Shown: positions 13,492-49,607, counted from the first letter of the stretch. The stretch: DNA of 64,000 nucleotides from Ylistrum balloti (GCF_031769215.1 NW_026782247.1:310001-374000); one strand, 5' to 3'. Numbers and translations: made by a program. The notes: generated by a model not told the origin, from the sequence alone.

Positions 13492-13525
13492 GTTTTTTTT
13501 ATTTTCTGTTTTTTTTCAGGTAAGT
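13492..13525 (+). other. Candidate recursive splice site RS1 (zero-length exon / ratchet point)
   Basis: tgttttttttattttctgttttttttCAG|GTAAGT: CAG 13517-13519, GTAAGT 13520-13525. Branch-like TACTAAT at 13458-13464, although an intervening AG lies at 13488-13489. Confidence 0.6.
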
Positions 13526-14744
13526 GAATGTTACAGTGGAATACAGATGAAAGGTATTGATTCCTGCATGGTTACCACAGAAAATAACAAAGAGTTCTTC
13601 ACATTTTACGTTAGATGCTAACCGGACGTAGTTTGGTAAGCTTGGTATTGAAGATGCAAGATTGGTTTAAATACAGTATACAGCTGTGAAAAGTTTCAAC
13701 ATTTCCAGAGGTTAAAAAACACTGGTGCAAACATATGCAATTCCTATCTGAAGTTATTTATCAAGAAGTTGAGATTAGGGATCTGCAATGGAGTGGGTGT
13801 GTCCCGTGGTGAGAAATTTTACTTATTACTCATAATAGCATCCAACGCTTATCCATTTAGTGTGAAGATCATATGACGGGCCTTTGGTATGATGTTCAGT
13901 GATACAGCCACCAGGTACTACAAGGAGACCTCATCTGAAAATGACCCTGACTTAATTCATGCTTTGATAAAACAAGAGAATAACCCCAATGTTTTGCAAT
14001 TGTGACATTCATAGTATTAATATATCTGCATTATGTATCAGGATCTCAATCCATAGTTTTACACTGAATACTCCAGCTGTTGGCATTCCTGACATCCCAG
14101 TACACCATTATTGCCACTGTCAAATCTTCCATAATGAATTTTTACTTTTCCAATAATTTCATCTGCCTGTGGAAACAGAGTTTATGAAGTGCATTCATTG
14201 ATGTGAATCTTACTTTTGGTTGGGGATGATAGCTGTTGATTTGCTTTACAGTTCATTTTTGGTGTTACCATGATTTATTTCTAACTCAAATAGAATTGAG
14301 ATGGGAAGTTTAGAAAATGAACTTGAACATGTACTTGCCAATCAAATTAATATTGGGGTAATTGTCAAGGCAATTTCAACATGTACAAAATTTTAGTGCT
14401 GTGTATGACAAAAGGGTTTCAGGATCAATTTTCTCAGAAAACTTCCTCACATTAGGCCACATTTAAAATGAAAATCCTCCGAAAAAAAAAAGAAAAATAA
14501 TTTTTGCTGGTTTCTTTTGGATCTGTATATCTAATTTGCCAGTGCGATGGTCTGATAATTATTAACAGTGTAGTAAGTGCTTTAAAAGTTTGCACAAAGT
14601 CAACATGTTGTTTACATGTTATCTGGACTTCAAAATTATTTTGATTTTCAGAGAAAAATAAAAAGTTATTTGATCTTTTTTTGAAATCTAGGAAAAAATC
14701 TTAATGAGGAAATGACTTTCTATACAGCAAATTAAATACAGGAC

Positions 14745-15117
14745 CAAAAACCAGTGGTCTTTATAGACAGGTAGTCAGTATGTGAATGTGTCCTGTATAT
14801 AGAGATCTGTTATATAAATCTTTATATAAAATCGTTTTTATAAATAGGTAGTCTTTTATAGAGTTTATATTCATAAAGATGTGGTCTTTTTATAGAGGTA
14901 ATGTTATTAAAGGGATGGTCTTGTTATAGAGGTTATATTCATTAAGAGTTGGTCTTTTATAGAGGTTATGTTTATAAAGAGATGGTCTTATTATAGAGGT
15001 TATATTCATACAGAGGTGATCCTGACATAGGGGTTGTCTTTAGATAGAAATAATTATTATATAGTGGTTGGATTTATATAGATAGTCGTTATATGGAGGT
15101 GGTCATTATAAAGAGAT
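14745..15117. repeat. Degenerate short-period GGTCTTT(T)ATAGAGGT repeat region, probably derived from a MITE-like element
   Basis: Recurrent ggtctttatag / agaggt motifs starting at accagtggtctttatagacaggt. Confidence 0.55.
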
Positions 15118-15740
15118 GGTCTTTATACAGATATGGTCTATAAATAGAAGTTGTATTTATGTAGAAGTAGTTCTGTCTTTATACAGAGATGGTCTATAAA
15201 TAGAAGTTGTATTTATGTAGAAGTAGTTCTGTCTTTATACAGAGATGGTCTATAAATAGAAGTTGTATGTATGTAGAAGTAGTCTTGTCTTTATACAGAG
15301 ATGGTCTATAAATAGAAGTTGTATGTATGTAGAAGTAGTGTTGTCTTTATACAGAGATGGTCTATAAATAGAAGTTGTATGTATGTAGAAGTAGTCTTGT
15401 CTTTATACAGAGATGGTCTATAAATAGAAGTTGTATGTATGTAGAAGTAGTCTTGTCTTTATACAGAGATGGTCTATAAATAGAAGTTGTATGTATGTAG
15501 AAGTAGTCTTGTCTTTATACAGAGATGGTCTATAAATAGAAGTTGTATGTATGTAGACGTAGTCTATATATACCACTTGTCTTTATACAGAGATGGTCTA
15601 TAAATAGAAGTTGTATGTATGGAGAAGTAGTCTATATATACCACTTGTCTTTATACAGAGATGGTCTATAAATAGAAGTTGTATGTATGTAGACGTAGTC
15701 TGTATATACCACTTGTCTTTATACAGAGATGGTCTTTGTA
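15118..15740. repeat. 56/68-bp minisatellite (CTTTATACAGAGATGGTCTATAAATAGAAGTTGTATGTATGTAGAAGTAGTCTTGT)
   Basis: Unit starts every 56 bp from 15121 to 15513, then 68-bp units (next starts 15581, 15649, 15717) carrying an ATATATACCA-containing insert. Confidence 0.93.
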
Positions 15741-16834
15741 ATGAGGTGGTATTTATATAGAGGGGTGATTATCTAGAGGTGGTATTTGGTTCACATTTAT
15801 CAATAATCTTTTTCTATTCATCTAAATAATGAACTGTAAACAATCTTTATTATAGCTTTTATCAATAATTCTTAGGTGTACATGTATATGCTTTATCATA
15901 ATTGAAAAAAAAATTACATTCTGAAAACTTTTCAGCTCTAAAAAGTCTTACTAGGACTAGTAAGCGTAGGTTTTGTTACAGATCTGCATGATATAGCATA
16001 CACATTTGTAGGCATTATTCAGAAAAAAATTCCTCATGATATGAGGTCAATGTTTTCTGGTTTCATAAGAACACAGGATAGCTGTGACATGTGTATAACG
16101 ATGCATTCATTAATGGTTACAATATTCCTGTCATGGCTTGCTCTTTTCTACATGAATTCATGCATCACATACCTGAAAATCGACTGAGGGAGAAAAAAAT
16201 CTCTCGTCATAGAAGTGGAAATGTGTTCATTGATGGGGAAGATTGGACGGGGACCTATTTGCCACACAATATTTTTTCATGTCACTGGCGGCAATAGATT
16301 GATTGGCATGACGACATTGAGTCTGGCTTGCATACTTGGCCTCAAATTAGCCAAAATTCAGAAATTTTTTCAAGTAGAATTAATTAATTTTTTTAAGTAA
16401 TATTGAAAATTTATGCAGTATTAAGTTTAAGCGATTGCGAGGGGGGGATCTCTTTTGTGGTGTTTAGTGAATTTTTTCATTCATTGGGACTTTCATTTCG
16501 TAACTGATAAAAAAGCATTTTAACATCTAATATCTGTTAAAAGTTGTGACCTTTCTGTTCATTAAAATATTAAAATGTTGGCTTAAACAATTTGTTAAGA
16601 AACACATAAATATCACAATAAAATAGGCTGAATCCAATGTTGATTCTTCTGGTTATTGTTTGGAGTGTATAAATCATTAGAAAGCGGAGGGTTCAAACAA
16701 GCTTCCAAAAGGTCACGTGATAACCTAGGTTATCTTGGGTTAAAACAGTGACTTGCAGTAGAAACAACAATGAGTATTGATCAGTGTTAATTGGAAGCTG
16801 ATAATCGTTATCATTTTTTCTTAAAAAGTGCTAT

Positions 16835-17179
16835 AATTATGTTCCAGGATCAAAAGATGAGGGACATATTATTTTTGTGCTGTCTGTTGTCAACTTTAAC
16901 CTTGCCCATAACTATTGAACTGTAAGAGACGGGATTATCATATTTAGAATGTGTGTTCCTTGTGATAAGACCTTTCTGATGGTATACAAATTTTTGACCA
17001 TGTGACCTTGACCTTTGACCTACATTTGAAAGTAAAAAAGTTGTTACCACAGCAAAGACATAAGTTTGTCACAAAGTGTGCATGCAATTAGCACATGCCT
17101 TACACAGAACAGTTTTAATGCAGCACTTCAGAATTTTGCTGCCAGCAGGGGCTTGGTGTTTCATAAACACATCTTGTTT
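16835..17179 (+). mobile_element. Non-autonomous Helentron-type element (HINE), single core unit
   Basis: 5' TTATGTTCC..GGGACATA inner inverted repeat. Core CATGTGACCTTGACCTTTGACC. 3' GCAGGGGC followed by the hairpin GTGTTT-CAT-AAACAC and ATCTTGTTT. Confidence 0.7.
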
Positions 17180-18678
17180 CAAGTATAGTCTAATTTAAAG
17201 AATCACAATGCTTGCCCAAAATCAAACGCTTGAAAAAGATAATGAAATCTATCAATTTAGTTTCCTTCAAACGTTTTGCGTAATATTAAAGATTAATTTT
17301 AAAAGGAGATAACTTTAATGTGTTCAATAATACAAAACTTGTTTTGTTTTATTTAATGTTCAAAATAAAATGGAATTATTTATAGACAAATAATTATCAT
17401 AAAGACCTGGCTTTTTAAAACATTATCTTCATCAGTTTCATGCGCATTTTCTGATAAAAAAAAAAAATGAAAAAAAATCAGTCTGTTAGTGGACTGGTAT
17501 TAAATCTCGAGCTTTTATTACAAAGTTACAAAACAAATGTTTTGAAATATTGATATTAAAAATAGTGGTTAGTTTATGGAGGTCTGACTAGATGCTTTTA
17601 TGCAATGATTTATGTGATAAAAGTTATGTTTATGTTGATGGCAGAAATTCCTTGAAAGTAAAACGCCCCATATTTTTTCATTTCCTACTTGTCAGTCTTA
17701 TCCTGTTCTTTTACTGACAAAGCATTGAAAGGTTTTAGCACATATTGTGTTTTTCCGATATTAAAAAGCATGTATCATGTTTAGGTATTGTGTGCTGTGG
17801 TGTGATGTCCTACTTAATGGTAACACATCTTGATATACGATGAGATGTTTACCTTTCAAGCTGCTTTCTCATGATGGAACAGAGAGCGATTTGCCAGGAG
17901 ATGTGTGGCTACTAGTTGCTGCAGATTCCCAGATCTATCGCTGTGGTGACGATAACTGTGATTGATATGCTGTTGTAACGCAAAGGAAGTGAAAGTCATT
18001 TAACCTGTTGCGAATTACGGAACAAATCAATGGCAATCCTCAACACGAACCACGACAATGATCAGGGTCAAAGGTCAGGGTGCCAATTGAAATTTTGTGA
18101 TCAATAGCAATGCAATTCTGATGATATTTCATGTTGGGTCAAAATCCTCGCTACAGCACAAAAAAAAAAAAAAAAATACCATGTCATTGATTTTTTATTA
18201 GTCTGTTTCTTTATTTATTCTCTGAAGAATTTTGTGTTACTCAAAATTGTTACAGAAGAAAAGAACCACGTGGAAGATTAATTTAGTGGGTCAAAAGTCA
18301 GATCTAACATTTAGACAATCAATACTGAATTTTCTATTTCAGTACCACTGACGGGTGAGAGGTCAGTGTTGTCAGTGCAATGCTGATTGGCTTAAACAGA
18401 ATCTCATTGAGACAGGATCTCAGAATGGTTGAAAATGTCAAGGAATTGACAATTCATTTTACAAATGTATGGCAAATTGTAGAGATCGCAAATCCAATTT
18501 TTAAGCCCAAGAAAGAGTGTTGCAATTGATTATTTGGTTGCCATGGAGATGGCATAGATTTTTTCTGAAAGGCTGTCAGATTTTTTAGTGTTTCTTACGT
18601 GTGGGAGCTGCACAAAATTTGTGTTTGAAGAAAATTAAGGCTTTGTAAATTTGCATAAGTTATCCTACCAGATAGGGT

Positions 18679-18986
18679 CATACAGTGAATGGTTTGACTA
18701 GGGGGACAACACACAGCTGGGTCATACAGTGAATGGTTTGACTAGGGGGACAACACACAGCTGGGTCATACAGTGAATGGTTTGACTAGGGGGACAACAC
18801 ACAGCTAGTTCACACAGTGAATGGTTTGACTAGGGGGACGACACATAGCTGGGTCATACAGTGAATGGTTAGACTAGGGGGACGACACACAGCTGGGTCA
18901 CACAGTGAATGGTGTGACTAGGGAGACAACACACAGCTGGGTCATACAGTGAATGGTTTGACTAGGGGGACAACACATAATTTGAT
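18679..18986. repeat. 44-bp minisatellite type 1 (CATACAGTGAATGGTTTGACTAGGGGGACAACACACAGCTGGGT) x7
   Basis: Unit starts at 18679, 18723, 18767, 18811, 18855, 18899, 18943. Confidence 0.95.
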
Positions 18987-20068
18987 CATACAGTGAATGG
19001 TTTGGGTAGGACAACAGATAGCCAGGTCATACAGTGAATGGTTTGGGTAGGACAACAGATAGCCAGGTCATACAGTGAATGGTTTGGGTAGGACAACAGA
19101 TAGCCAGGTCATACAGTGAATGGTTTGGGTAGGACAACAGATAGCCAGGTCATACAGTGAATGGTTTGGGTAGAGGGACAACAGATAGCCATGTCATACA
19201 GTGAATGGTTTGGGTAGGACAACAGATAGCCAGGTCATACAGTGGATGGTTTGGGTAGAGGGACAACAGATAGCCAGGTCATACAGTGAATGGTTTGGGT
19301 AGAGGGACAACAGATAGCCAGGTCATACAGTGAATGGTTTGGGTAGAGGGACAACAGATAGCCAGGTCATACAGTGAATGGTTTGGGTAGGACAACAGAT
19401 CGCCAGGCGCCAGGTCATACAGTGAATGGTTTGGGTAGAAGGACAACAGATAGCCAGGTCATACAGTGAATGGTTTGGGTAGAAGGACAACAGATAGCCA
19501 GGTCAACAGATAGCCAGGTCATACAGTGAATGGTTTGGGTAGAGGGACAACAGATAGCCAGGTCATACAGTGAATGGTTTGGGTAGGACAACAGATAGCC
19601 AGGTCATACAGTGGATGGTTTGGGTAGAGGGACAACAGAGCGCCAGGTCATACAGTGAATGGTTTGGGTAGAGGGACAACAGATAGCCAGGTCATACAGT
19701 GAATGGTTTGGGTAGGACAACAGATAGCCAGGTCATACAGTGAATGGTTTGGGTAGAGGGACAACAGATAGCCAGGTCATACAGTGAATGGTTTGGGTAG
19801 AGGGACAACAGATAGCCAGGTCATACAGTGAATGGTTTGGGTAGAAGGACAACAGATAGCCAGGTCATACAGTGGATGGTTTGGGTAGAAGGACAACAGA
19901 TAGCCAGGTCATACAGTGAATGGTTTGGGTAGAGGGACAACAGATAGCCAGGTCATACAGTGAATGGTTTGGGTAGAGGGACAACAGATAGCCAGGTCAT
20001 ACAGTGAATGGTTTGGGTAGGACAACAGATAGCCAGGTCATACAGTGAATGGTTTGGGAAGAGGGACA
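18987..20068. repeat. 41/44-bp minisatellite type 2 (CATACAGTGAATGGTTTGGGTAG[AGG]GACAACAGATAGCCAGGT), about 25 copies
   Basis: Contiguous with type 1 and shares the 18-bp prefix CATACAGTGAATGGTTTG. Confidence 0.95.
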
Positions 20069-25802: not shown

Positions 25803-25890
25803 ATCTAGAATTAGATAAAGTAGAGCCAAGTAATGAATTAAACTGTATCATACAGCTGTTTCGTCCTTCTTGGACTTATCTGTCATCCTA
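25803..25890 (+). repeat. Single un-amplified monomer plus flank homologous to the 45-bp array at 63433-64000
   Basis: TAGAGCCA..ATGAATTAAACTG..CATACAGCTGTTTCGTCCTTCT.GGACT is shared with the array. Confidence 0.75.
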
Positions 25891-27216: not shown

Positions 27217-27491
27217 NNNNNNNNNNNNNNNNNNNNNNNNNNNNNNNNNNNNNNNNNNNNNNNNNNNNNNNNNNNNNNNNNNNNNNNNNNNNNNNNNNNN
27301 NNNNNNNNNNNNNNNNNNNNNNNNNNNNNNNNNNNNNNNNNNNNNNNNNNNNNNNNNNNNNNNNNNNNNNNNNNNNNNNNNNNNNNNNNNNNNNNNNNNN
27401 NNNNNNNNNNNNNNNNNNNNNNNNNNNNNNNNNNNNNNNNNNNNNNNNNNNNNNNNNNNNNNNNNNNNNNNNNNNNNNNNNNNNNNNNNNN
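27217..27491. other. Assembly gap (275 N)
   Basis: Run of N flanked by two different repeats. Confidence 1.
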
Positions 27492-27800: not shown

Positions 27801-30800
27801 ATTTGTCACAAGTGTCAATATGTAATTTATTTCATCAGTGTACAAAAGTAATCTGCTAATTGCTGTCTTGTAGATTTGTCGTTGATGAAGCTAGCTGACG
27901 TGGCTTTTATAAAAACCACATGGATTTTGAAGTTGTTTGAGATACTGAGCGTATGTAGATAAGTTACATGTTTCACAGTACTTAACAGCTCTGTATCTCC
28001 AATCTTCATAGCTTAGTTCTTAGAAATCTCTGAAAGGGAAACATCACATTAAAAATAAAATTCATTCACACTCGCAATGATAACTTAGAAATTGCCGAGC
28101 TGCCTAAAGGGAAACCACTTTTCAAATTAAACTTTTAAGATCTCTTTATCTTGGCGCGAGTAAAATTGACAGTTTTTGATTAGAGGTGGAAAAGGAATAG
28201 AGATTGTTACCAGCGATATAGATTAGAGCTACTAATTACAAACGAATGCTGATCACAAACCAACACCGTTTTGTTAGCTTCATTCCCCAAAATCACTGTT
28301 ATTTCACTTGAAGAATATTGTTTTTTTGGTCTTGATTTAATCCTTATTTTGATTTCAAAAGATCTGAGTCAAAGTTAAAACATATCTTTATGATTTTTAA
28401 AAGATGTAAACTATGGTCTGAAAGAGAAAAAAATGAGAATGTTATGCAGAAGGAGTTGGATAGTCATGGAGTTAGTGTTAGTGGTTTCTTGCTGGTTGAA
28501 TACTCCCACTGTTCATTAATGCAGGATCCCTGTTTCACTGTGTCAGAGGTACTCCCTCTGGCTAAAATCACAATAAACTCATGTTGCTGAGCTGGGAATT
28601 TCTTTACACAATAAAACATAACTTTGTATCTGATTCTGCAGCTTTGAAAGTCAAAAATTTCCTGTGGTGTATATGAGAAATGTTAAATGTACTTGAACAG
28701 GAAAAAAATTTGTGTCATGATTATCGGTCTCTGTTTGGAGTTATACTCCAGGAGGCAAATTGTTTGACGCTGTAATTCTATATGAAATGTAGGGATTAAA
28801 ATACAAAAACATAGAACCTCCTTTTAGATGTGTTTGGGACTGTTAAGAAAGTATGAGAACATAATACAAATATTAACAAAAGTATTGATTGACAAAAATT
28901 CATTATTTTTTCAAAACATGAATTTTTATAAGTGCTGATACTTTCTAGTAATTAAGATTTTTAAAAGAAATAATTATTTCTGAGTATCCTAGGGAGGCAT
29001 TGCAGTAGTAGATAAATTACCTCCCCTTAGGAAGAAGTCTTCTGCACCAGACTGATATATACCAGATGAAAAAAAACCCAACACAAAACAAAAACATACG
29101 TTTCGGAGTGCTGGAGTTGGGGAATGGTAGAGTTGGGGAATGATAGAATCATGATAGATAAATGTCAGTCTCACCTCAGCATTGTCATATTTCATTTATA
29201 ATCTTATGTATGTCATATAATTATGTCATCTCTTTTGAATTTTGACCAAAACGTGTTGCTGGCTGGGATTTCTCCATTTCTCAAAATTGGCAAAAAAATT
29301 TCACCTTTTCCACCATTAGTTGTATCGCCCATGTTCTAATTAAAAACCCATGTAATGGGATGATAAGTCATCTTATGCACTGAACAATTTGACAACTTGT
29401 AAGGGGAGACAACTCTGTCTTGTGCTAGAGCATTAGTCTACTCTGTGTCCCATTTATCTGTAATCGCAGATACTACCATAAACTTGTTCTTGAAGTCCAT
29501 CAGGAAATTATTTCAGTGTTTAAACTGAATTTAATGCATCAAAATATTTGACTGACATTTTAAATATTGCCCTCCCTGGGTTAAATCCTTTTATCTGTGG
29601 AATGAGTCTACACTGTATCTAGGCTAAAGCAATAGATTTGTGATTATCCTGCAAGGTTGGAAGGATTCTTGAAGAACTCTGATAATGTCATTTAGTGTCT
29701 GACCTTCCTGTATAATGCCATTGAAATTGAAATATTGAGCCTTAAATTGCTCTTGCTGCTTTTCTGTCTTACAACTGGCAATGTATTATTACAACTGTCA
29801 AACGTCTGGTAAGTTAAAACACAAACAGGAACCTATCTGGGCAATATCTTTTTTTTTTGAAATTTGAATAATTTATATTGCAAGATTAAGATTTTAACTA
29901 CTGAAATATATGACAATTCAAAGTAATAGCAAAGATGTTCAAAGACTTGTTAGCTTTAAAATCTAAGAAGACATGAATTTGAATGGGTTTGTTATAATGG
30001 AAATTTTTACCTTTATCACGTTTTAGGAGGTGACATTCATTAAATGAGTGTGTGATTTACCTGATTTTTAGCAGTTTTTGTAATTGTTTCATGATAAAAA
30101 AGTAAATGTTAAAAATAATTGACAGTTACGAGTCCTTTTTTGAATGTGTTAGTACATAGACATGCTTTGATAAACTAATAAAACTTTAAATCACTCTTTT
30201 GATCTATGAGGATGGGGGTCGGATTTTAATAAACTTGTTATTTAAATAAAATTAAATGACGTAACTTTAAGGATCATACGACAGAAACATATCATGTACA
30301 AATTGATGGTTATTTATAGAATATCTTAAATCTCTGTCTAGCGATAAAGAGGCCCAGGCCAGTTAAACTGTTGAGATACTGACTGTGATTTATAACTGTT
30401 TGGGCTAGAAGTTGTTCTTTACAAGCCTTAATGGCAAACGTTTGTGCAATATTGGGATGAATTATATCCTGTAGATTAAAGGTCAAAGAAGCAACATTTG
30501 CTTGTCATGATGAATGCCAATTAAAGTCAAGGTCAAGGCCTTGAACTTTTCTGCAAGGCATTTTGCAGTCACAAATTTGTTCATGAATTTAGGAGTTATG
30601 TCATTGAATGGGTAGTTACCCTATTGATTGAGTAATGATATACACTTGATAATCAGTCCTTTCATGTTTATTATACTTAAATAAAAAGCCAATAGGCTAT
30701 TTCATTGTCCTTCAGTAAGTTTTTCCGCCACAGTGAGTCACATTTTACGTCTTAAATTCTTGGCTGATGAAGGAATAAATACAGTATTTTGTTTATACCA

Positions 30801-33800
30801 AATGACAGGCTTATTTATGACTCATAATGAAAACTCTTCATTGAAGTTACTTAATTAAAAGATTTCTTCAATTTTTTCCTCAAAATGCTGGTGTTTATTT
30901 ATACAGCTGGCTAAAATTATCGGTAATTATGTTGAAGATGTATGAAACATTTACACATTGTACTTACAGTTTGGGACAATGTTTCTATTTTATCATAACT
31001 GTCTGCTCAGATAATGTCTGTGCATCACTACATATAGAGCCACTGATTATTCACAATGCATTTCAATATCTGCACACTTGTGTTCCACTTCTATGAAGGA
31101 CGAGAGGAAGTCGTTCAGCTCTCGCCTCACAAGTGCTGAAACTCTGCAGGCGGCGATAGATTGGAGAAATTGACATATTGTTGATGAGTACTTTCCGTAC
31201 TTGAAGGGAGTGAAGAGTACAAGTGCTGTTAACATGGACAGTCAGTTATGAACGTGTAAATTATTTCTTCCGATTAATAATTACAAATTACAATTATCTG
31301 CATGGAGAAAAAGTTGGGAAGGCAGATTTTAAATTTACACATTGGTTGTTTTTGAGTAACAGTGAACGGTAATAGATGTGAATACTTTGTTTGTAGTAGA
31401 GCTCAATGAAAGGGCTGATATTGGTATGTTCTACTGAGAGAGAGCATGAGACTTTTCAACTTTAGGAAAACACCTAGCATGTAAGCCATGGTACCTATCC
31501 AGGACAGATTTGCATTTCTCATGAAGGTGAGGTCATGGACCTTTTTCTGCTCTCTGGTGGTCTCCATGTGCAAGCCATTTACTGTATATCAACATATTTT
31601 TGCCCCAGGTTATTTTTGCCCTTGTCCCATTATACAAAAATTTGCCAAATGATCATTTTGCCCTGTGAGGATTATATAAAAAGGGATACATAAGCGAAAC
31701 CAATTGTTTGCCCATTCTTAAATTTGCTGCCTTGTTCATGGACAAAAACGGTAAAATGTTAAAAGAGGGGAAAAAATGCCCTAGTATACAATAATTTCTT
31801 TCTTTCAGAAGCATGTAGTAGGCCTCCTGTATGTTGTTAGTGATCTAGTCGCCACTACCTATGAAATGGGACCCCACCTAAAATTGACCATTGCAGTTCA
31901 CGGGGTAATAAACCTAATAAAGAATCAAATGAATAATGATAATAATAAAAAACCAAGTGATACTTTTGTCTGCAGTACAGTATCTAAAGTTTTGAGACTT
32001 TACTGGGTTGTACTTGTACAGGGTTTGTTTGACAGGAAGCTCATGAAATAGTGATTGATGCCCGTTTCTGGTGTTCTATATATGTTCCAATGTTTCCATC
32101 CATTTGTTTGAGAATGATCGATTCAGGTTGTAAAAGCAAACACAGCTTTCCCACATTAATACTCAAGTTTTTAAAAACAAGTTAAGATTGATAATCTTTC
32201 ATACATAGAAATTTGGAAATTTTTTGGATATTAAGTGTTTGAAAATAATATGGAGGTTTTGAAATGATTGTTTCATCTTATTAATGTTGATTGATGGAAA
32301 ATTGCATCTTTTGAGAGTTAGATTTAAATGCATTAGCAATATATCATGAAATCTTCATGCTGTTGTACTGTTTTTTATGTAAATGAGAAAAGTCTGATCT
32401 TGTCTTTGAAATATCGACTCTGTTCTATTGGCTTTATTCTGCTGTGTCTAAATCTGGAGCCAGATATACTTCAGATCTATTCACCATGGCCCCCGAATTG
32501 TGATCTAGATCTGTTGGAAACAAACATCAGAATAAGACTCTATTGCAAAGGATGAGAATGAGTCTAGTTGCCTTGTAAATTCAAATAGCCTTGTATTAAT
32601 GTAATGATGCTGTAACTGGAATATTGAGGATTCCAGGAGCCAGGAAAACGAACGGAGCACTGACTATGGCCTAATCTGTTCACTTAGAACACATCTGTTT
32701 TCTACTAAATCATGAAAATAGAGTAATTATCATCTCAAGTATGAAGTTATATAGTTTTGTATTGCAAATTACATTTAAATGAATTAACACAGGATTTAAA
32801 GAAATATTCCATTTTAATTATAGTAAAGTAGAATCTTAGATGTAGTAATATTAATGGGACTAGCGCAGTAGTGTTGCTTCTTGCCAATAGCTCTTTGTGT
32901 CTATACACAGTTAACGTCATGCGATACAACGATCCCTCCCAGACATCTCAATATTCATTTCTTTAGTATATATATACATTTCATGTCATTTCTCATTTAA
33001 GAACTTGTATGAGTGGCGGAATCGCAGTAAATATTTCATCTTGCCGCCATAGAAATCGAAAATAATTGGTCGTTAACGGTTTCTTGGATTGAAGCATTGC
33101 CTTAGAGGATAAAAATTATTTGTGGAAATTTTCCAAACATAAACAATTTGTTTGGCGGTGCCTGTTTTTTGAGGCGATTTTCTTAATTTACAAACAAACA
33201 AATTCATCATTATATGTGTTGTTTTATCATGTTTTTCTTTTTTTTTCATATCTGAAATACATTTCCAGAGTCTAATAAGTACAGAATTCAGAATCTTCTT
33301 TTCAAATTGTTGTTTTTATCCTGTGAAAAACCCTCGGGGCAAATAAATTACTTTGTACTGAAAGTCAAGGGGTGGGCTTATTACAGGACAAAAACCCCAG
33401 GAGGCAAACAAATTACTAAAAAATCTGGCGCAGGGCTTATGATAGGACAGCAAGTCCATGGACAAAAAATTAGTTCTTACCTGACAAAAAAATCAAGCAA
33501 GCATCAAACTCAATGCTGGAGGTGAGGGTTTATCCTGTCTTACGGCAATGTCCAGGTTTATGCATTAAATGGTTTCACAATTTCTCTGTCTGCGAAACTG
33601 TTAGATCCCAGCTAAGATGGCTGAAGACGACTTATCTGTGCTGTCAATATCAGTGTCAACAGAGTTTTAGGAACATATCGATAAGCTATCTGACAAGATA
33701 TTATCATTTGTTTTAGGGATTGTTGATATATGAATAAGATTATACATACAGTCTAAGCCCTAGAGGGACAAACCTGAGCCAATCTTAATATGGTGCAGGC

Positions 33801-33959
33801 AATTTGATGGAAAGGACTTAATGTACCACGTATCTGTGAAATTATTGACTTTAAAAAACAGGAGGTTAAGTGGTGTTTTTTGTGTGCATGGATCAAAAAA
33901 TCGTTGTAAAGAGATTTGATAAGAATGGGAGAAAATGGATAGATCACTCCTAAAGATAA

Positions 33960-34330
33960 GGAAAATACACTTAATCACTCATAGCGCAGACATAAAGGGA
34001 CATAACTCTAAATTCTAAAGTAAAGGAATAGGTCCTGTTCTAATGTAAAATGACAAAGCCATAAAAAAGAAAGAAATAGATATGAAGTGGTATAACTTTA
34101 ATAAATGGGCGCAAGTCATAGTCATAGAAATAAAGGGATGTAACTCCAAGCTTATCAAGGGAGATAACTCTCATTTCTGAAATAAAGGGAGAAATAAGAC
34201 TACAAGAAGTCAATGTTAAGTTACACCATTAGGGGCCATCCCTTAACACTGAACATACAGCAGTAGTAACAAGGGAAGTAACTCACAAGAGAAGCGAAAT
34301 ATTTCCAAAGAGGAAAAAGATACAATCTGT
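33960..34330 (-). mobile_element. Degraded HINE-like core array (AAGGG[A/G]NATAACTC motif cluster)
   Basis: Motif copies at 33995, 34133, 34157 and 34271. Termini unclear. Confidence 0.35.
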
Positions 34331-34574
34331 TATAAAAAAAAATGTTTCAATTAAAAAATCTGTGCAAAAACATCAAAGAAAAATGGAAACATTCTGGGTA
34401 CAGTAAAAACTGTAACTTAAAAAGGAATCTTGGAAATTTCGGTAAAGGGAGAAAATCCCATCTACATATAAGACATAATGATGACATAAAGGGCACCAGC
34501 ACTTTATTGAAATTGCCCATTAATGGTTAGATGTCTTACTTAGAAATATCTACATGTGCTATAATGTCATTTAT

Positions 34575-34601
34575 AATTTGTTTTTATTGTTTCAGGTAAG
34601 T
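34575..34601 (+). other. Candidate recursive splice site RS2
   Basis: aatttgtttttattgtttCAG|GTAAGT: CAG 34593-34595, GTAAGT 34596-34601. A downstream alternative donor ATG|GTAAGA lies at 34662. Confidence 0.6.
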
Positions 34602-34849
34602 TGACATTTGTTGGTGAACTTTTGGTTTGAAATGAGGGAAATATGATGTGACAATGAGATGGTAAGAGTCAGCTGTTAGTGGATACAGTATCTAAATGGC
34701 AGGCAAAAATAGGTGTGTATGTGATTAAGAGCCCCAGAGTATGTATTAATCAAGCTAAAATTAATATGTTCATCCTCTATCAATAGACTATCTATTTAAA
34801 ATCAGGTTCCTGACAGCTCTTCCTTTTCTTGTGACTTACAACTCAAAGA

Positions 34850-35040
34850 GCTGGCTCTATTTTAGCCAGAGTTTTTATGTTGACTTCCACCTCAATATGC
34901 TGGCTCTCTATTTTAGCCAGAGTTTTTCTTTTGACTTCCACCTCAATATGCTGGCTCTCTATTTTAGCCATAGTTTTTCTGTTGACTTCCACCTCAATAT
35001 GCTGGCTCTCTATTTCAGCCAGAGTTTTTTCTGTTGACTT
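34850..35040. repeat. About 51-bp tandem repeat x3.7, each unit containing a CTGGCT...AGCCAG stem
   Basis: Unit starts at 34850, 34899, 34950, 35001. Confidence 0.9.
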
Positions 35041-37109
35041 ACATCTTCGCCTTATTTTAAGATAGATTTTGCCGTGACATATTAATTGCTGAAGACCCCA
35101 AGAAAAAGAATCATGATGCCAATTTTAATTTGGTTGTCTAGTTTGCTTTATGTTTCTGTGTAGATCAGGAAAGACTCCTAAGGAAAGCAGATTAAAAAGA
35201 AGAAAGAAAATGAAAAATAGGATTTCCTTCACTCAGTACATATATAAAACAACCTCTAGAGGGCGCTGTTCAGCCATTTGTCTCTGAACTTGTCTTGGAA
35301 CTAACTGTAATTTGATAAGTCCTTGTTATTCTGACAACATTTAAAGGTTACACATAGATAATCAAAAGTTCTTCTCAAACTTCTGTGTCTCTTGAGAAAC
35401 CATCAAAGAATCAGGTATTTTGTTTATTAAAGATAAATTCAATTTTGTGGCAAGGAAAGTGAATTAATATGATATTAGATTTTTGATGATAAGTTTATGT
35501 TTATAATTATTATGCCAACATAGAGACCTTAGATATAGTTGTATTCTCATAAGTAATAAGAGTGGGATTGGTCAGATTTTATAGCTTCAGAGGAAAGTCG
35601 CAGCTATATCAAAATTTACAAATGAAATTAAAAAAAATAGAAAAGAGAAAATTTGAAATGAAAGGAATAATATTGAATGCAACAGATTAATGGTTTGATA
35701 TGTCAGTTTATCTAGTTCAGACTTGTAGATAATATTTATTATAAATGGGTTAAACATATCTGAAACTCACAAGAAGATCTTGAAATTTCGAAAGAATATG
35801 AATACATAATGGTCTGCTGATTGACAGATTTTATGCACTTTACTTTAAAAGGATGTGGCTACCAGGCAGTCCATGTCTCCTAATAGGCCCACTCTATTTA
35901 AGTTTCTGTTTGTTAAAATAACCACTACTTAAGGTTATTATACTGTAAAAACCTACCTCTGACTCTGAACCAGGGTTGAAATGTCAATCCTGTGGTTGTA
36001 TTGCAAAATGCTTTGTTACTGTGAAAGCATATATTTTTATTTATCTAAAGTCTTGAGGTTTTAGAAAAAAAATGTAAAAATGCATTTTAGTTGCTACCTT
36101 AATTAATTGATTTTACCTAGTCGATCCTGTTGTAATAAGAATTATTTCAACATGTGTAGGTTTATAATTTCATGTACATGTATATTCCTGGATTAAGCAT
36201 ACCGATGAAATCAGTGAAAATTAAAACCCAACAACAGTTCATGCCTTACACATACCGTTGTGCCCTATCATGGTCAAAAATGTATCTACAGTAAAAAAAA
36301 AAAAGATTTCTCTATAGATGCCTTGTAATTTTGACTTTGTCCTGACAAAAGAAAACAGATTGATAACATTCAGTATGTTCGGAGGAACCAGATAATGTTT
36401 ATTAATAGTTGTTGACTAGAGATAACTCTTCACACAAAGAGGTAATAAAGTGTATGGTATCATGTTTCCTTAAATCTCTAACAAAAAATTACCTTCCAAC
36501 TGAGCTGTCCTCTGTTGATTGTGAGGCCAGTGACAGCCGAAAGATTCAAGGGAGATAATGCTAAAAAAGGGTTGTTGACTTTTGAACAAAAGGGTCATTG
36601 ACTTTGGAGAGTGAGGTTTGAGTCCAACGAAAACAGTTTTCACAACATCTGTAAAAATGTTTCAGAAATGGATGGTCAACTTGAAAAGAGTTTGTTATTG
36701 TATTATTAATATTGTTTATGTAGATGTTCACAGAAAAGTTTTTTTTTTCATTTTTCATCTTAAAAAAAATTTAAAGAAATTTAGGTGATCAATGATGGTT
36801 AAAATGATGTATTTGTATTAAGAGATGGTAGTTATATAGGAAGTTCATATATTATTACGGTGATATTATGATGATTTCTATCTTTTTTAAATCAACCTAA
36901 TCTGTATTTAGTTTTGTTTAGAATATTGGATGATATACAAATAGTGAATGATGACTTGTTGGTTGTCTGTGAGATAAGCTTGTGTACACTTTGTGTCTAG
37001 TATACATAGTGTTGACAATAACATCACTTAATCTCAGATTGGCAAAGAAATGTGAAATACAATCATAGAAGTTTCAAGTGTGTCAATATTTAGTTATGTG
37101 GAGACACCT

Positions 37110-37223
37110 AGATAACAGGTACCGTAGAGTTCTGAAACATCTGAACACTGAATTTAATGTAGATAACAGGTACGGTAGAGTTCTGAAACATTTGAACACT
37201 GAATTTAATGTAAATAACAGGTA
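37110..37223. repeat. 51-bp tandem duplication x2.2
   Basis: AGATAACAGGTAC..TAGAGTTCTGAAACAT.TGAACACTGAATTTAATGT at 37110 and 37161, partial copy at 37212. Confidence 0.9.
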
Positions 37224-39540
37224 TATTACAATATTGTAGTTATCACACTTTGATATGTGTGTACTGAACTGGATTTTGATGTATGTATTATCAGTAATTT
37301 ATCTTCATTGTAGCAATTTAGAAGTTTTACAACTATTTAAGAAAAAAAAGGGCCAAAAAAAAAAGAGTAAAATTTGTCAACTTAAATATATTGTAATATA
37401 GTCTGAAGGTGTAGGCCATTTTATGACATGTGTTCTTGATAATATGATAGATGCCAAACTTTAAGGGTTGATATTATAAACTACCTCATGTTGCTTGTCC
37501 AAACAAAATTATGGATTTTATCATGTGATGTCTTTGTTTATTGGTTGTTAGTGAAATTAGAGAATATTGTGTATATATGGTAATTTCTCCTTTTTTGTTT
37601 GGAGATTTCTCTTCACTATGATTTGTTCAATCAGTTATGATCTCTCCTGATTTGAGGGTATTTACTACAGTCAGTCTGCCCACTTTACAAAATTGTAGAC
37701 ATTTTAATTAAACAATTCGTATAGACATTTAAAAGTTTATCTATTTTTCTGCTTTTTTTCCACTGGCATTTCATTAGAAACCATATTATCTTATTTATAA
37801 ATTGATATATGTCTATTATTAAAATTCCCATCATATGAAGTTATATTGATCAGAAAATACCTGTAATTAGTTTGTCAAATATGTAGGCTCAAATTTCGCA
37901 GGTTCAAATATTTATGGTTCGGTTACTGGTGAAGATTTTTGCAGTGAACATTTGCACATTGTAATCAAATAGTAAATCATACATAAGTGTTCAGAGATAA
38001 GATATCAAATTAACTGGTTGTTGTATGTTTTTTTAAGTAATTTGAGCATTCACTGACATTTTAAAAAGAAAATATAATAGATCAGGATAGCTATATAGTT
38101 GATATCTTTATGTTATTTATAAAATGAAGTCTGTTAGTGTTTGAGTGGAATTTCTATGAAGGAAAAAGACCATTGAAGTCGTAAATATATGAATACATTG
38201 TACATGGTGTCAGAATCAAACATACTTTTATTTAGTCTTATGTGACTGGGGAGGAGGTTTCGTCCAGATTGTTATTTAGGCAAGCTTTTCAATTCAAAAT
38301 TGAATTTGTAAATCCTATGAACGGTAATGGTGTTTCACACTCCGTTAATGTTGTATAATACTTGGCCATGCATTCAACAGAAAGGATAGGCTAGCCTGTT
38401 AGGGATAGATTTCTGCTTTGTGAAACTTTTCGTTAAAATTAAGTTTATTTTTTAGAAATCATATTTGCACTAGATTACTTTTGTCAATAACGATAGGTTG
38501 ATGACGGAAAAAAATGGATTACAGTTTTTATGGAAATTTCATGTCGTGGCGTCTGTGTACGATATAAATCTCGTCTTCACATTATCGCGATAAGTTTGGC
38601 CTCGTCTTCATATGACTTGTAATATTGTAAAATTAAAATATCTCCCGCTAGTCAATTATTGCAGTTTTATTCTCTTGTTTTCTTATCTTTAGTAAAAAGG
38701 TAAATCTGAAATGGAACATTCTGATTTCAAATTTTTGAAACTTTTAGTTAATGGCTCAATAATTTAACACAATAATGCTAATGGGATATTTATATAAACC
38801 CTTTCAAAGAATTAAACACTTAAGAAGATATTAGAAACACACAGGAGATATACTTATATATGCTGAGATATGAGATGTGGACTCTGGCATTAAGCCATAT
38901 CCTTACCTCTCTCGTTCGCTTTCAGAATACAAATACTTGAGACAGAAAATCATTTTGAATCATTAATCACAAACAAGTAAGAATCATTTCTAAAAATGAA
39001 GATTGATGATATATGTTAAATTATCCTGTCTCTGAAGTTACCAATGTTTGGAGATAACATGCCTCAGATTTTGAAATGAAAACCTAAATGAACTGAGTTT
39101 TTGTTAGTATTGGGAGATATCAGCTGACAAAGTCATATGATAAACAATTTGCAGCTATCATCATAAATAGAATCTCTAGTACGTTATCACTATATTTTCT
39201 AAATGTCCTTTTATCGGGATATCTTGCCTAATGGTGAGGCAGATTCTAAGCTTGTCCATTTGGTGCTGTACTGGATTATGAGTTCAAGGATTGGACGGGT
39301 TATGAGTTGAAATTGTCTCCCTTCGTTGGCCATGTTACAATGTCTAAATAAATCACAATGATATACAATGCTGTATGTTGGTCTGAAGGTTTCAGATTTT
39401 GATTACAAATTAGAATTGTATTTGAGTTTGATGAACTGACAAACATATTGATAACATTGATATATATCATACATATGTATTTCGGAGGATTTCCCGTCCT
39501 TACCTGACTAAAAATAGAACAAAAATATATAAATAAATTG

Positions 39541-39755
39541 GTTTAGTTAATTATTGTGCTACATCCTATTAACAGCCAGTGTTATTTGAGAATAGGCCAT
39601 GTTTGGGTGGCAGAGGAAAGCTGGAGTTTCTGAAAAAAAATCTACCTGCAGCCAGTACCTGGTGACTGCCCTACGTAGATATCGAACCCATGACCCAGAG
39701 GTGGAGGGGTAGTGATAGACAGTTAGATGCCTTAACCACTTGGCCAAGAAGACCC
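39541..39755 (-). mobile_element. tRNA-derived SINE, family A, full length
   Basis: Reverse complement reads GGGTCTTCTTGGCCAAGTGGTTAAGGCATC (A-box) ... GGGTTCGATATC (B-box) ... CTCCAGCTTTCCTCTGCCACCCAAAC ... GGCTGTTAATAGGATGT. Confidence 0.85.
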
Positions 39756-42730
39756 TGTAAAAATAAACAAACAAATAAACAAAAAATTGTTATTTTTAGA
39801 TATTTTTGTGAATGACTGTAAATTTGAATGATAGGGTAAAATATCTTCTCATGAAAGGTAATCAGCTATCAGGATTATGTAAAACACTGATTTCTGAGAA
39901 AAAAAGAGAAGTATCAATACTGGTCATTGTCTGTTTCTGTATCATGATAAATGATATCTGTGTTATCAATGACAGCCTCAGTCTGAAAAGTACAAGTGCA
40001 TTAGATTCTTGCTCGTAATGCGACAGTTTGAGATAGGAAAGTAAATAGCGATGCAGGCTGGCTGACTCGGAGCGCTGCGCTTCATTAAAGAGCTCCATTC
40101 AAAGACCTGTAACTCTCATCAACCCCTGTCCATCCTCATAACTCATACTCAAGCTTGCCAAAGTGCCTAGAAAAATTGTGAAAAAATGGCCTCGAGATTT
40201 TGATTCAATCTTTGAATAATTGATAAGAAATATACTAGCAATGGATTGGTCATCGGATTCTGGCGCCATTTAGTCTTAAGCGTCACTGTGGAGACATCGG
40301 TCTGTTGACTTTCTAGTCAGGGTAGAGATGGTTTTGTAATTTGTCTTGAAGAATGAGGCCTCCCCATAGGGGATATGTTAAGGAGCTTACAGCCCCATGA
40401 AGGTTTATCTATACAAAGCTCACATGCATGGGGAAATAGTTTGACCTTTGAGTGTTCAGATTTTACATATTTAAATTGCATGTAACTGAAGCGAATCTGA
40501 TAAATGTAGGACAATGCTTTTAAAAAAATCTGAAGTGTTTTGATATTTTTTAAAATTCCAAACCACTGTCCGCCAAGGAGATTGAACCTGTAGAAGTTTT
40601 CAGAACAGGACAATCAAAATGGTTATGACAGTAGAAGATGTCTGTGGGGCTTTTATCATTAGGCTTGTTTCATTATTCCTTGTCTTGCTAGCATGCTTCA
40701 AGTCTTTATCATAGCATGGAGGGTCCCCATGGGGAATTATTCAGGTCAGAGGTTCTCATGGGGAATATTGACCCTGATTAAGATTTCATGCTTGTGGTAT
40801 AGAGTTTAGACTGAATATGTCCAGGTTTGGTAATGTTGAAATGTCAGTTACAGATTGCTGTATTCCAGTCTGTGTTTGGACAATTATCAGTGGCCTAGTA
40901 GCTAAGATTTCTTCCATCATGGATACCTGTATATGACCTTCATCACTAGCAAATGATTTTCTGTGTTCAGAGTGCAGAAGAATTAATGTATGTAACCTTC
41001 ACTTGTCACAAATATCTTGGTAACCTTGATTTTTCGCTATTAATGTAATGTAAAAGAATTCATGTAATATTTAACATGCCACAAATATCATTCTGACCTT
41101 GACCTCTAGAACAACGGTCTTCTATGTAGATTAGAACCTCAGATATCAACCGAAAAGAGTATAAGAAATTCTAAGTTTTGTTTATAAGTTGTGTTTGTGT
41201 GTTAGATATATGTTGTCAGTTCAATTAGAAGACTGCAGGCCTGTCAATACTCTTCATGTGCAGCAAGGTAGGTTATTGATCAATGATTTTTGTGTTGACT
41301 GTTTAACTGGTCCACTCAATGTTTGTGAAATTCTTCAGACTCGAGTCTACATGCTTTACAATTTGATGTCTAACACATGATCACTTTGGAATCTTAGTAA
41401 ATAGACTCTGAAACATCTTCTTCACTGCAGCAGAAACTTTTACAATTTATCGTAAACCCAGGTGTGTAATGTTCCTGTGTTACCTATAATTCTTCATTAG
41501 ACTCTTCCATTACTGATCTGGACCAATCCAATGTTACTACAGAGGAGATAAGTAGAATTCATTTAAACATTGTGACTTCCGCATTTAAACTAAAATAGGT
41601 GGAATTATCTAATAAACTTCAGGCAGAATTCAAAGGATGTGTTGATCGGGGCGGTGATTAGATCAAGGCTGAAACAGCATTAACACTTCCCGGAAAGAGA
41701 ATCTTAAAGAGCAATTTGTTCTTTTGATGGAAAAAATGATTGTATTAAGGTGACTCAGATGAAATCAAAAGGATCTCTTGAACTTCAAACCATCTTGTAC
41801 TTGAAGACTGTATGTAAATATTTGTATAATGTGAAAGTTGGCACAGGAGACGAAGCCAGATTGTTCTGTGGGATGTGGCAGCACAAGCAATCTCGTAAGC
41901 AACCTCGTCCTAGGACGAAATTCATGACATCAAGGATAATTAGTTTGATGTGTCGGATAATCATTAAAGAGATAGTTCGGTCTTCGTCATAATCAGATGG
42001 AATGTGTACCAAGTTACAGAGTAATCTGCCCTTGTTGCCATGAAAACAAGTTTAATTATAGCAACATTTTTTTTGTCATTTCATCTTTAATTTCATGGCA
42101 CTTGTTCCACTTGAGTGGTGTGTTAGTTCTATCAACCTTCTGTGTTACTATAATCAAATGTATCCTTTTAACTTCTTTACCAAACATGTTGGGATAATCT
42201 GCAACAGTTCTACCAAGTTTTTTCTTTAATCTTTGAAATTAAATTTCTGTCTCTATCTCTTTCCTACTTTTTCTTTTAATCTTAAGAATCTTAAGAAAAT
42301 AGCTGTGAATCATTCTTGGAGAAAAATGCAGTTTTCCTTTTAGAAATCTGTGTCCCGTTGGACCTGAGAATCTAATAGAACACAGCTTCAACATGTTCCT
42401 CTGTAGTCCGATTTTATTATTTCTGTGAGAGTTACAGACAAATCAATGTGCAGTTGAGGCGACCACTATTTCTGTAGGTACGTTAACACTGATCTTTTCT
42501 GACAGGTGGTTGGTGCTAAAAGGTTCCTTAATGTGATATTATAAATTGACCTTATGATACAAGTTATTAACTAAAAGCACTACATAAACCCTAAAAACAC
42601 TTTATACAGAAACAAAATGTAAACCTTGTGATAATCTTGTATAGAGTTGTCTGATTAAGGGTATGTTTGATGATTTTCTGTAGTGGATGAAGAAATATCT
42701 TTGGAACACTTAGGAAACCAATATCACATT

Positions 42731-44628: not shown

Positions 44629-44895
44629 ATATTTTGGACAATGTAACACAATTAACAAAGAAAAACAACTTTTGACCTGTGCCCTGTCCAGGCCTCGAGC
44701 TCACAATCTGCGACATCAAATCGCCTAGCCAACAGACTACCTAACCGTTATACAACAGGGATGTCACGATGGTGTAACAATTAGACCGTTTGGAATTTCT
44801 TTGGCTGTGTGATTTGGTAGATTGTGAGCTCGAGGCCTGGACAGGTCATGAGTCAAAAATTGTCCTTCTTTATTGTGTTACATTGTCAAAAATAT
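44629..44895. mobile_element. Fold-back (palindromic) element with tRNA/SINE-head-like arms
   Basis: Perfect 27-bp inverted repeat CCTGTCCAGGCCTCGAGCTCACAATCT (44683-44709 and 44819-44845). Imperfect complementarity extends outward to TTTTGGACAATGTAACACAAT / ATTGTGTTACATTGTCAAAA and inward to a short spacer near 44757-44770. Confidence 0.85.
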
Positions 44896-46919: not shown

Positions 46920-47170
46920 AATATGATTGGTAGACCATGTTGTCATGGCCTACTGTGATTGGTTGTAACTGACAATCAACATGACAACCAGCTGTGATTG
47001 GTTGACACTGTTGCCATGACAACTAGCTGTAATTGGTTAAAACTATTGCTTGTTGAACTAACTGATTGCTTGGTTGTGGTTGTTCATATCACCATGACAA
47101 CCTGCTGTTAATGACACTGTTACCATGACAATTACAGCCAATTGGGATTTGGAAATATCACCATGACAGC
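46920..47170. promoter_or_regulatory. Cluster of RFX X-box-like and CCAAT (NF-Y)-like motifs in a degenerate repeat of about 40 bp
   Basis: GTTGCCATGACAAC (47010-47023), GTTACCATGACAAT (47119-47132), ATCACCATGACAAC (47088-47101). ATTGG x5. Confidence 0.35.
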
Positions 47171-48393
47171 AAGCAGTTGATATTTTGATGTAGTGCACCC
47201 TTTTTTAAGCGTTTTTTGACTGGACTTATTAGGCGAAATGTTGTCATGAATGTTCATATTATAAATTCTGGACAAGGTTACAATATAACGAGACTAGCTA
47301 TAACTTTGGCTTCCTGATGAAAATCTTATTATATAATTCCACACAGTCTACTGACTTGATTAGTTTGACAAAATGAGCATTTTCTTATTCTGATTTTGTC
47401 ATCAGTTTGATCAAATGAATGTCAGAATTTCATTTCAGCATTTCCCAGTGGTTTAACAAGTTTTTGTTTTCAAATGTCAGTAGATAGTGTAACCTTATAA
47501 ATCAATTTACAAGGAATCTGGGTTTGATAGGTCATCTCAGAGAAATGGTGATGGGTGTTTTCATGGTCACTTGATCAAACTATTGAATGAATAAGTCCCT
47601 GGTGTTTAATATTCTAAAGTGTGGACGACATTAGAAGAAAAAAATCAGTATATAAAAGTCTTCCTGGTTGTTACAGGCATTAGTTGATGAAGTTACGGTT
47701 TAATTTTTTTCGTGTTGTGTGAATCGTTTGATTGTTTCCTTGATTGTAGGACTCCAGTGAAATCTGTGTTTTAATTAAGTGATGTAACATATTGCAATTG
47801 GTAGAAAATGTGTTCTATCAAATATTCCATCTAAACAACATCTTATTCTGTATTTTCTTTCAAGATCATTTTTTTTAAAATAACATTCTTGTGTTGCTGA
47901 ACGGTAGCTAAAAAAATTGCTTTTTGAATTGGAAAAGAAAATTGTCATGCTATTGATTTGATACTGTTGTGTTTTGTTGCTCTGTTAGATGAAGATGCAT
48001 TTGTTGAATGTGATGCGTCTATCTGTACTAGAGTTTAGCAAGATATAGGTGGGCTTAGTACCGTCATCATCTGACTATTACTGCCTAGACATACTACTGG
48101 TACATTAGTGCAAAAGTCTGGGGATGCATAACCTTTGACCTTAAAAGTATATATTTGACCTTTAGGATCAGCTGTAGATGTCAATTGATTAATATGTGAC
48201 CTTGGAATCACTCAATGGAAATGTATAATTAGCATATTTTGGATTGAATTTTGTGAATTTCTGTAAAGGAAATTTGGATGAAGCCTTGATAGGATACCAT
48301 GAAATAGATATTTCACAAATCTCAAGGTATTGGAGTATATATCTTTCTGAAATTATATTCACTTATCAAGTGATAATTACGCCCTGAACAAGT

Positions 48394-48693
48394 CCTGAAA
48401 CGTCAACTGAATTAGGGAGAGACTAGTTACACTGTACAAGGCCTGAAACGTCAACTGAATTAGGGAGAGACTAGTTACACTGTACAAGGCCTGAAATGTC
48501 AACTGAATTAGGGAGAGACTAGTTACACTGTACAAGGCCTGAAATGTCAACTGAATTAGGGAGAGACTAGTTACACTGTACAAGGCCTGAAATGTCAACT
48601 GAATTAGGGAGAGACTAGTTACACTTTACAAGGCCTGAAATGTCAACTGAATTAGGGAGAGACTAGTTACACTGTACAAGGCCTGAAATGTCT
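48394..48693. repeat. 48-bp minisatellite (CCTGAAATGTCAACTGAATTAGGGAGAGACTAGTTACACTGTACAAGG) x6.2
   Basis: Unit starts every 48 bp from 48394. It explains the 16-aa repeat ORFs on the minus strand. Confidence 0.95.
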
Positions 48694-49565
48694 GAAGACT
48701 TAAGTTACAGTGTATATATATCCAGTAGGATTTGTGTTCTTGTAATGACAATTTTAAAAATGAAATGAACTGCTTGTATAACAAATTCTTTGCTGATAAG
48801 TTGCATTTTGGTTTATAAGAGTTCAATTTCAAGATTCTGTTGGTGTTGTGTATGAATGAAGCTGATATCTTTGTTCAGACATAGGAAGAGAACTTTTATA
48901 ACGAGTGTATGTCGTTCCATATCACTGTTAGGTTCACAATATACCAAACCTTATTAAGAATCATGATGATACAGAAATGAACTGTTTTCATCAATTTCCT
49001 TTGTAAGTTAGCTATAGACACAGGAGACAGGCCTCTGGAATATTTACAGTATAACCGTTCCTGGTATGCAGTGCCAAAGGCATTATATGACCAAATTGGC
49101 ACGATTTTTTGCAAGGTCGCATAAATCGAATGTTGCAATGCTTGATAATAAAGCGAAGATTGGACCCTATAATGAATATAAGGAAATGGCCCCAAGGGGT
49201 TCCAAACGACATCGAGGAATAACGAATATCTACTGTTCTCTAATGATGTAGATATTGTGGGTTAACATGCCAGGAGAATTCGGAGTGTCCATTTCTTTGG
49301 TAATGAGGAAAAAAATTTGTACATTGGTCACAGACCAAGTTAATGTGGATATTTTGTGTAGTAGTATCAGTATCATACAAAATGAGGTTCCTCATCTTAT
49401 CCTTTCTTCTTTAGACATTTTTGCTTTCAATAATGTGTTGATGAATTCCGATACATGAAAACCTTTTGCCAAAATTAAGCTTAGATCTTTCAGTAAACAA
49501 TAATCTCTTTACACAAACATATATTGGTAATATAGAACACTCTACAAGCTATTAGATAATAATAA

Positions 49566-49593
49566 CTTTCTTTTCTTGTCATTCCAGGTAAGT
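49566..49593 (+). other. Candidate recursive splice site RS3
   Basis: ctttcttttcttgtcattcCAG|GTAAGT: CAG 49585-49587, GTAAGT 49588-49593. Confidence 0.6.
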
Positions 49594-49607
49594 GGTGATG
49601 TGTTCTA

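Follow-up and report, generated by a model that had tools for sequence, protein, structure and literature searches.

Candidate zero-nucleotide recursive splice sites in an exon-free 64-kb window of the scallop Ylistrum balloti

Drosophila ratchet points, at which very long introns are removed stepwise, have the form (Y)nNCAG/GTAAGT (slash, junction between the fused acceptor and donor) with TT at positions -5/-6, and they occur as several sites on one strand of exon-free DNA tens of kb long (Hatton 1998; Burnette 2005; Duff et al. 2015, 10.1101/006163; Joseph & Lai 2021, PMC8605326). TT at -5/-6 was found in 99.5% of fly ratchet points (Duff et al., 10.1101/006163). Fly recursive segments measure 2.6-63.6 kb, with a median of 16.4 kb, and the cryptic recursive-splicing exon (RS-exon) of the fly is short, ends at a donor that is weaker than that of the ratchet point, and is usually either non-coding or out of frame. 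Here we describe three sites of this type on the + strand of a window of 64,000 nt (1-64000) from the mollusc Ylistrum balloti (GCF_031769215.1 NW_026782247.1:310001-374000). Like the fly sites, they share one strand of a long exon-free region and delimit segments of 15-21 kb; unlike the fly sites, they are known from sequence alone, in a mollusc, and two similar sites are found on the opposite strand. Overall, the window appears to be a good sequence-level candidate, as yet unproven, for recursive splicing in a mollusc.

Recursive sites have been inferred before from juxtaposed consensus sequences only. The study of Shepard et al. 2009 (PMC2773006) set thousands of annotated introns against their complements, in contrast to the single unannotated window considered here, and reported ratchet-point (RP) sites per 100 kb of sense strand and complement at 2.2/0.10 in fly, 0.81/0.10 in beetle and 0.54/0.066 in sea urchin, with a ratio of ~1:1 in vertebrates. 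The sense excess in long introns was ~20-fold in fly and 4-8-fold in bee, beetle and urchin; it was also seen in mosquito, but not in vertebrates, and lophotrochozoans were not among the species covered. Our window holds 4.7 sites per 100 kb on the + strand, a density obtained with our own score model and not with the 80% matrix of Shepard et al. Vertebrate recursive-splicing exons (Sibley et al. 2015; Blazquez 2018, as summarized in PMC8605326 and PMC13149111) also combine an acceptor with a reconstituted donor in long introns, with a downstream donor competing. According to these summaries, however, they are mostly expressed exons under the control of the exon junction complex, with few fully suppressed zero-length sites, whereas the present window showed no sign of an expressed exon. 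Experimental proof of recursive splicing is limited to Drosophila, mouse and human (2026 review, PMC13149111), and we found no report of recursive splicing in molluscs in the literature searched. If real, the sites would thus represent a known mechanism in a new phylum, apparently not described there before.

All counts given below are from this one window unless stated otherwise. The 9-mer CAGGTAAGT occurs on the + strand at 13517-13525, 34593-34601 and 49585-49593 (sites 1, 2 and 3; Table 1) and is absent from the - strand, as an earlier sequence-only reading of this DNA had reported. That reading had also noted a strong T/C tract ahead of each copy, and we counted 18/20, 14/20 and 17/20 pyrimidines in the 20 nt upstream of sites 1, 2 and 3, respectively; at least 14/20 is reached by 7% of + strand positions. 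The distances between sites were likewise as reported, 21,076 bp between sites 1 and 2 (across an assembly gap of estimated length) and 14,992 bp between sites 2 and 3, but the description of the sites as evenly spaced was generous, since the two distances differ by a ratio of 1.4. The expected number of 9-mers was calculated with analytic Markov models of orders 0-4 derived from the window's own sequence. These gave 0.25-0.34 copies on the + strand, with P ~0.004 for at least three. The frequency of a tract (at least 14/20 pyrimidines) before CAG in the window is 6.8%, and multiplying it in lowered the expectation to ~0.02 and the probability of three such sites to ~2e-6 per strand-window.

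The quality of the sites was also evaluated with a composite score, a simple log-odds model of our own and not a published matrix, which was applied to every AG/GT and covers the pyrimidine tract (-20 to -5), positions -4 and -3, and donor positions +3 to +6. Among the 292 AG/GT sites of the + strand, the three best scores (14.9, 14.3 and 10.8) belonged to the three sites and the fourth was only 4.1. In order-3 Markov simulations, 0.05 sites per strand scored at least 10.5, and the median best score was 6.6 on the + strand and 6.3 on the - strand. The 230 AG/GT sites of the - strand included two high scores, 11.0 and 10.9 (junctions 39504 and 33481), followed by 5.9. The ratio of + to - sites in the window was 3:0 for the exact 9-mer and a score of at least 12, and 3:2 at a score of at least 10.5. 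In addition, the acceptor-like and donor-like halves of the signal are coupled on both strands, because the continuation of CAGGT by AAG was restricted to tract-preceded copies: it was observed on the + strand in 3/8 CAGGT with a tract versus 0/86 without (Fisher P=4e-4) and on the - strand in 2/7 versus 0/51 (P=0.013), with a pooled P of 5e-6. All five CAGGTAAG words in the window are preceded by a pyrimidine tract. We know of no element other than a recursive splice site that carries this composite signal.

Several features that had played no part in the selection of the sites by the earlier reader, namely TT at -5/-6, the AG-free zone, outlier status in the composite score and segment length, could be compared with fly ratchet points. 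TT at -5/-6 was present in 3/3 + strand sites, compared with 23% of the + strand sites that combine a tract and CAG (P ~0.012). No AG was found over 31, 53 and 33 nt upstream of sites 1, 2 and 3 (the closest AG being at -31 for site 1 and -33 for site 3), and candidate branch points lie at -19 in site 1 (YTNAY) and at -23 in site 2. The segments of 21.1 and 15.0 kb fall inside the fly range. Thus, wherever the sequence allowed a comparison with fly-type ratchet points, the three + strand sites appear to agree with them. In a possible resemblance to the cryptic RS-exons of Drosophila, two of the three sites are also followed, 66-116 nt downstream, by a candidate weaker donor, and no frame of the putative cryptic RS-exons after sites 1-3 is free of stop codons. 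Donors as good as these occur within +20 to +130 of 12% (site 1) and 7% (site 2) of random positions, so that the downstream donor of site 1 is weak evidence; downstream of site 3, no donor scored above 0.1, a level equaled or exceeded at 44% of random positions.

The sites are situated in DNA that resembles the interior of a gene but lacks recognizable coding sequence. The GC content of the window is 34.7%, close to the ~34% that the sequence-only reading had assumed. Its statement that the flanking DNA holds no recognizable coding exons was borne out: neither open reading frames (ORFs) of at least 90 aa nor a GC ranking of 336 stop-to-stop ORFs yielded a convincing exon on either strand of the 64 kb, and a splice-aware search for open segments returned weak candidates only (3 on + and 2 on -). 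A Pfam scan of the ten best of the 336 stop-to-stop ORFs gave no match below E=0.04. Hidden exons were accordingly rejected. No Rfam match was detected in the window at gathering thresholds. The observed/expected (O/E) ratio of CpG is 0.31 across the window, with every 4-kb bin between 0.20 and 0.43, whereas that of GpC is 0.80. Such uniform depletion over 1-64000 implies long-standing germline methylation of the entire window. Methylation in bivalves (oyster) is mosaic and concentrated in gene bodies, including introns (PMC4378273), and a uniformly CpG-poor 64 kb may therefore, on this single-window O/E, fit a gene body. With tandem repeats masked, G exceeded C on the + strand in 16/16 bins (+0.092) and T exceeded A in 15/16 bins (+0.030), and no clear signal was obtained from the asymmetry of A/T runs in the window. 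An excess of T over A on the coding strand is a general eukaryotic pattern, and the G/C skew does not have the same sign in vertebrates as in the invertebrates studied (PMC5786239). Because of this variation in sign, the base skew argues, but not firmly, that the window is a single long unit whose sense strand is +. Together, the lack of exons, the CpG depletion and the uniform T and G excess on the + strand fit, although indirectly, a transcribed gene body read from the + strand.

If the three sites are zero-nucleotide recursive splice sites in a very long + strand intron whose exons lie outside the window, the upstream exon would be joined first to the AG at 13519. This joining would recreate a perfect U1-binding donor, composed of the exon end and GTAAGT, which could then be spliced to the AG at 34595, next to that at 49587, and last to the true downstream exon. 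The intron would thereby be taken out in pieces of ~15-21 kb. Sites 1 and 2 may be recognized, in a fly-like manner, via short cryptic exons ended by the weaker donors 116 and 66 nt downstream.

Table 1. Coordinates of candidate splice signals and adjoining features in the Y. balloti window (slash, splice junction; the ratchet donor score is 9.1)
Feature	Coordinates	Strand	Junction	Score	Remarks
Candidate ratchet point 1: 24-nt T-rich tract then CAG/GTAAGT	13493-13525	+	13519/13520	14.3	
Possible weaker donor TTTG/GTAAGC	13630-13643	+		3.1 (donor)	116 nt past junction 1
Assembly gap	27217-27491				275 N in the sequence, length estimated; between sites 1 and 2
Near-copy: T tract then CAG/GTAAGA	33475-33500	-	33481	10.9	site 33483; GT, not TT, at -5/-6
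Candidate ratchet point 2: T-rich tract then CAG/GTAAGT	34577-34601	+	34595/34596	10.8	
Possible weaker donor GATG/GTAAGA	34656-34669	+		4.2 (donor)	66 nt past junction 2
Near-copy: T tract then TAG TCAG/GTAAGG	39498-39530	-	39504	11.0	site 39506; closest upstream AG at -5
Candidate ratchet point 3: C/T tract then CAG/GTAAGT	49566-49593	+	49587/49588	14.9	best score in the window
21/63-nt minisatellite	49628-49867	+			begins 35 nt past site 3

Recursive splicing at the three + strand sites is the explanation that we favor, but we hold it at slightly below an even chance, because it has a sequence-only basis, two outliers stand on the - strand, and the null model was derived from one window. 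As proposed by the sequence-only reading, it agrees with the motif quality, the fly-type features and the exon-free context, whereas its strand specificity is weakened by the two good near-copies on the - strand. The latter weigh against it: both are clear outliers (P ~1e-3 to 3e-3), and if they are taken as the true background, the excess on the + strand has only P ~0.03. Such motifs are either commoner in this genome than the null model allows or maintained by a cause other than sense splicing. The caution of the earlier reading that near-consensus AG/GT motifs occur on both strands was correct. The two near-copies are not equivalent to the + strand sites, however: TT at -5/-6 is absent from both (GA and GT), and the one at 39506 is not a clean zero-nucleotide site because a competing AG lies 4 nt upstream, which leaves one clean - strand site (33483) that alone is within chance (P ~0.05). 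Further points also count against the proposal. Only 2/3 sites have a cryptic donor downstream, and its strength is unremarkable. Under a fly-like GC-skew rule, the excess of G over C would indicate the - strand as coding. The 21-kb spacing and the unity of site 1 with sites 2 and 3 depend on the scaffold join, since the assembly gap intervenes. In addition, the 63 nt around site 2 (34558-34620) that are free of listed variants in a second haplotype, described below, carry no weight, because a 75-nt variant-free stretch was found nearby and 2/24 substitutions are not listed.

Alternative explanations differ in how they account for sites on both strands. The motifs may be non-random and yet not be recursive splice sites, and play no part in splicing of the host transcript, if tract-CAG/GTAAG words are generated or tolerated on either strand of this genome, for example as relics of junction duplication or mini-introns, or as a strand-independent element. 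We consider this unlikely. In its favor are the three outliers on + and two on -, when ~0.05 are expected per strand. It also draws on the minisatellite that begins 35 nt past site 3, whose units (GTCATGTGATACCTGAAGT...; variants CCTGCAG, CCTGTAG and CCTGACGTAAAT) loosely resemble, by eye only, GTCATTCCAGGTAAGT at site 3 (region 49566-49627), and it looks as if the array might have been seeded from the site 3 junction. In this respect the locus is reminiscent of the 'mirages' of amphioxus, which are minisatellites derived from splice junctions, since here too splice-signal words adjoin a tandem array; but the three sites are single and lie outside the array units, and junction-derived arrays duplicate an exon end with its donor or an acceptor with its exon start, and not a fused acceptor-donor. 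In addition, a 63-nt GT...AG unit lies ahead of the - strand site at 33483 and opens with the same GTAAGA. Nevertheless, none of the five sites (0/5) belongs to a tandem array or has flanks in common with another, no known mechanism yields isolated perfect composites of acceptor and donor, and the + strand sites combine AG-free zones with the TT of fly ratchet points, neither of which a mutational relic needs.

The sites may instead be ordinary splice sites, either acceptors of unannotated noncoding, poison or alternative exons that start with GTAAGT or donors of noncoding exons, in a host gene or a long noncoding RNA on either strand, with no stepwise removal. This seems rather improbable. 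The weaker donors at +116 (site 1) and +66 (site 2) could close short exons, sites on two strands suit sense and antisense noncoding transcripts, and vertebrate recursive sites are mostly of the exon type. However, a normal acceptor needs no perfect 9-nt match to U1 right after its AG, and a normal donor needs no preceding tract, yet every one of the five words has one; moreover, the putative exons of sites 1-3 have stops in all frames, and site 3 is without a usable downstream donor. Coincidence would mean that a reader who went through many windows in search of precisely this word had singled out three good matches in noncoding DNA rich in AT and in T tracts; we give it little credence. The composite-score thresholds were set after inspection of the data, notes exist for 758 windows, and three 9-mers over both strands were reached in 3/100 dinucleotide shuffles (mean, 0.63 copies); on a look-elsewhere estimate, ~7 of the 758 windows would have three 9-mers on one strand by chance. 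With tracts at all three 9-mers, only ~0.002-0.02 such windows are expected, so that pure chance appears very unlikely as the origin of the three + strand sites even when selection over many windows is allowed for. The TT rule contributes a further, small probability to this calculation, and the distribution of composite scores is bimodal and not a tail. Finally, a more inclusive scheme could be imagined, in which lophotrochozoan zero-nucleotide recursive splicing operates on both strands, a sense transcript using the three + strand sites and an overlapping antisense transcript the - strand site or sites, and in which the ratchet points, being junction-like, seed minisatellites such as that beside site 3. 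We regard this combination as quite improbable.

If ratchet points were verified in a scallop, the mechanism would reach Lophotrochozoa as well, which would suggest that the removal of long introns step by step via fused acceptor-donor sites goes back to the bilaterian ancestor and is not an insect specialty. Such points would also offer concrete test sites in a group with many long introns. Such a result would be expected by many and useful, though not revolutionary; for now, the three sites constitute a well-formed prediction and not a demonstration.

Additional sequence data were available for part of the window. A search of public sequencing runs with positions 30000-39999 as the query returned a single match, a set of DNA contigs, and no RNA run; the contigs aligned to 31600-37599 and so covered site 2 and the - strand site at 33483. 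The run represents a second haplotype, ~1.6% diverged, with 24 substitutions in the 1.5 kb around site 2. Among the substitutions listed (2/24 are not), none is within 34558-34620, and variants flank this interval at 34557 and 34621; one change, at 33499, lies inside the tract of the - strand site. Read depth was single-copy at both sites. Local heterozygosity is high (~4%), with ~20 variants clustered in 34200-34700, and the second haplotype has a 21-nt insertion at 34433. A ~30-nt word at 33361-33391 reached ~40x single-copy depth in the same run (393 versus ~10), with contigs diverging on both sides, and is probably the core of a dispersed short repeat. Relatives of the ORF that spans site 1 were also sought as a route to orthologous DNA, and none was found. 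With regard to the assembly gap, a 34/68-nt minisatellite adjoins it on the left and a GA-rich array on the right; base composition, skew and CpG O/E are similar on either side, which agrees with a correct join but is no proof of one.

A shared repeat or transposon origin of the sites was considered and rejected, as none of them falls within a dispersed family of the window, the three sites are unlike in their flanks (whose mutual alignment was at the random level), and site 2 and the - strand site at 33483 show single-copy depth. On the - strand, a second GTAAGA stands 63 nt upstream of the CAG/GTAAGA at 33483, so that 33481-33543 forms a 63-nt unit resembling a GT...AG mini-intron that is followed by an identical donor. 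Three large minisatellites, at 2601-3351 (31-nt x24), 18676-20068 (44-nt x32) and 61165-62043 (21/27-nt x9-21), share a G-rich + strand, with a local GC skew of 0.30-0.42 of the same sign as in the surrounding unique DNA. A single 73-nt copy at 25818-25890 has 78% identity to the unit region of a 45-nt satellite at 63447-64000, 37.6 kb away. A short dispersed repeat similar to a miniature inverted-repeat transposable element (MITE) is present as one copy at 6589-6680 and as an inverted pair at 54224-54283 and 54325-54416, and a separate 72-nt inverted repeat at 44654-44874, 81% complementary with a 77-nt loop, is also MITE-like in appearance.

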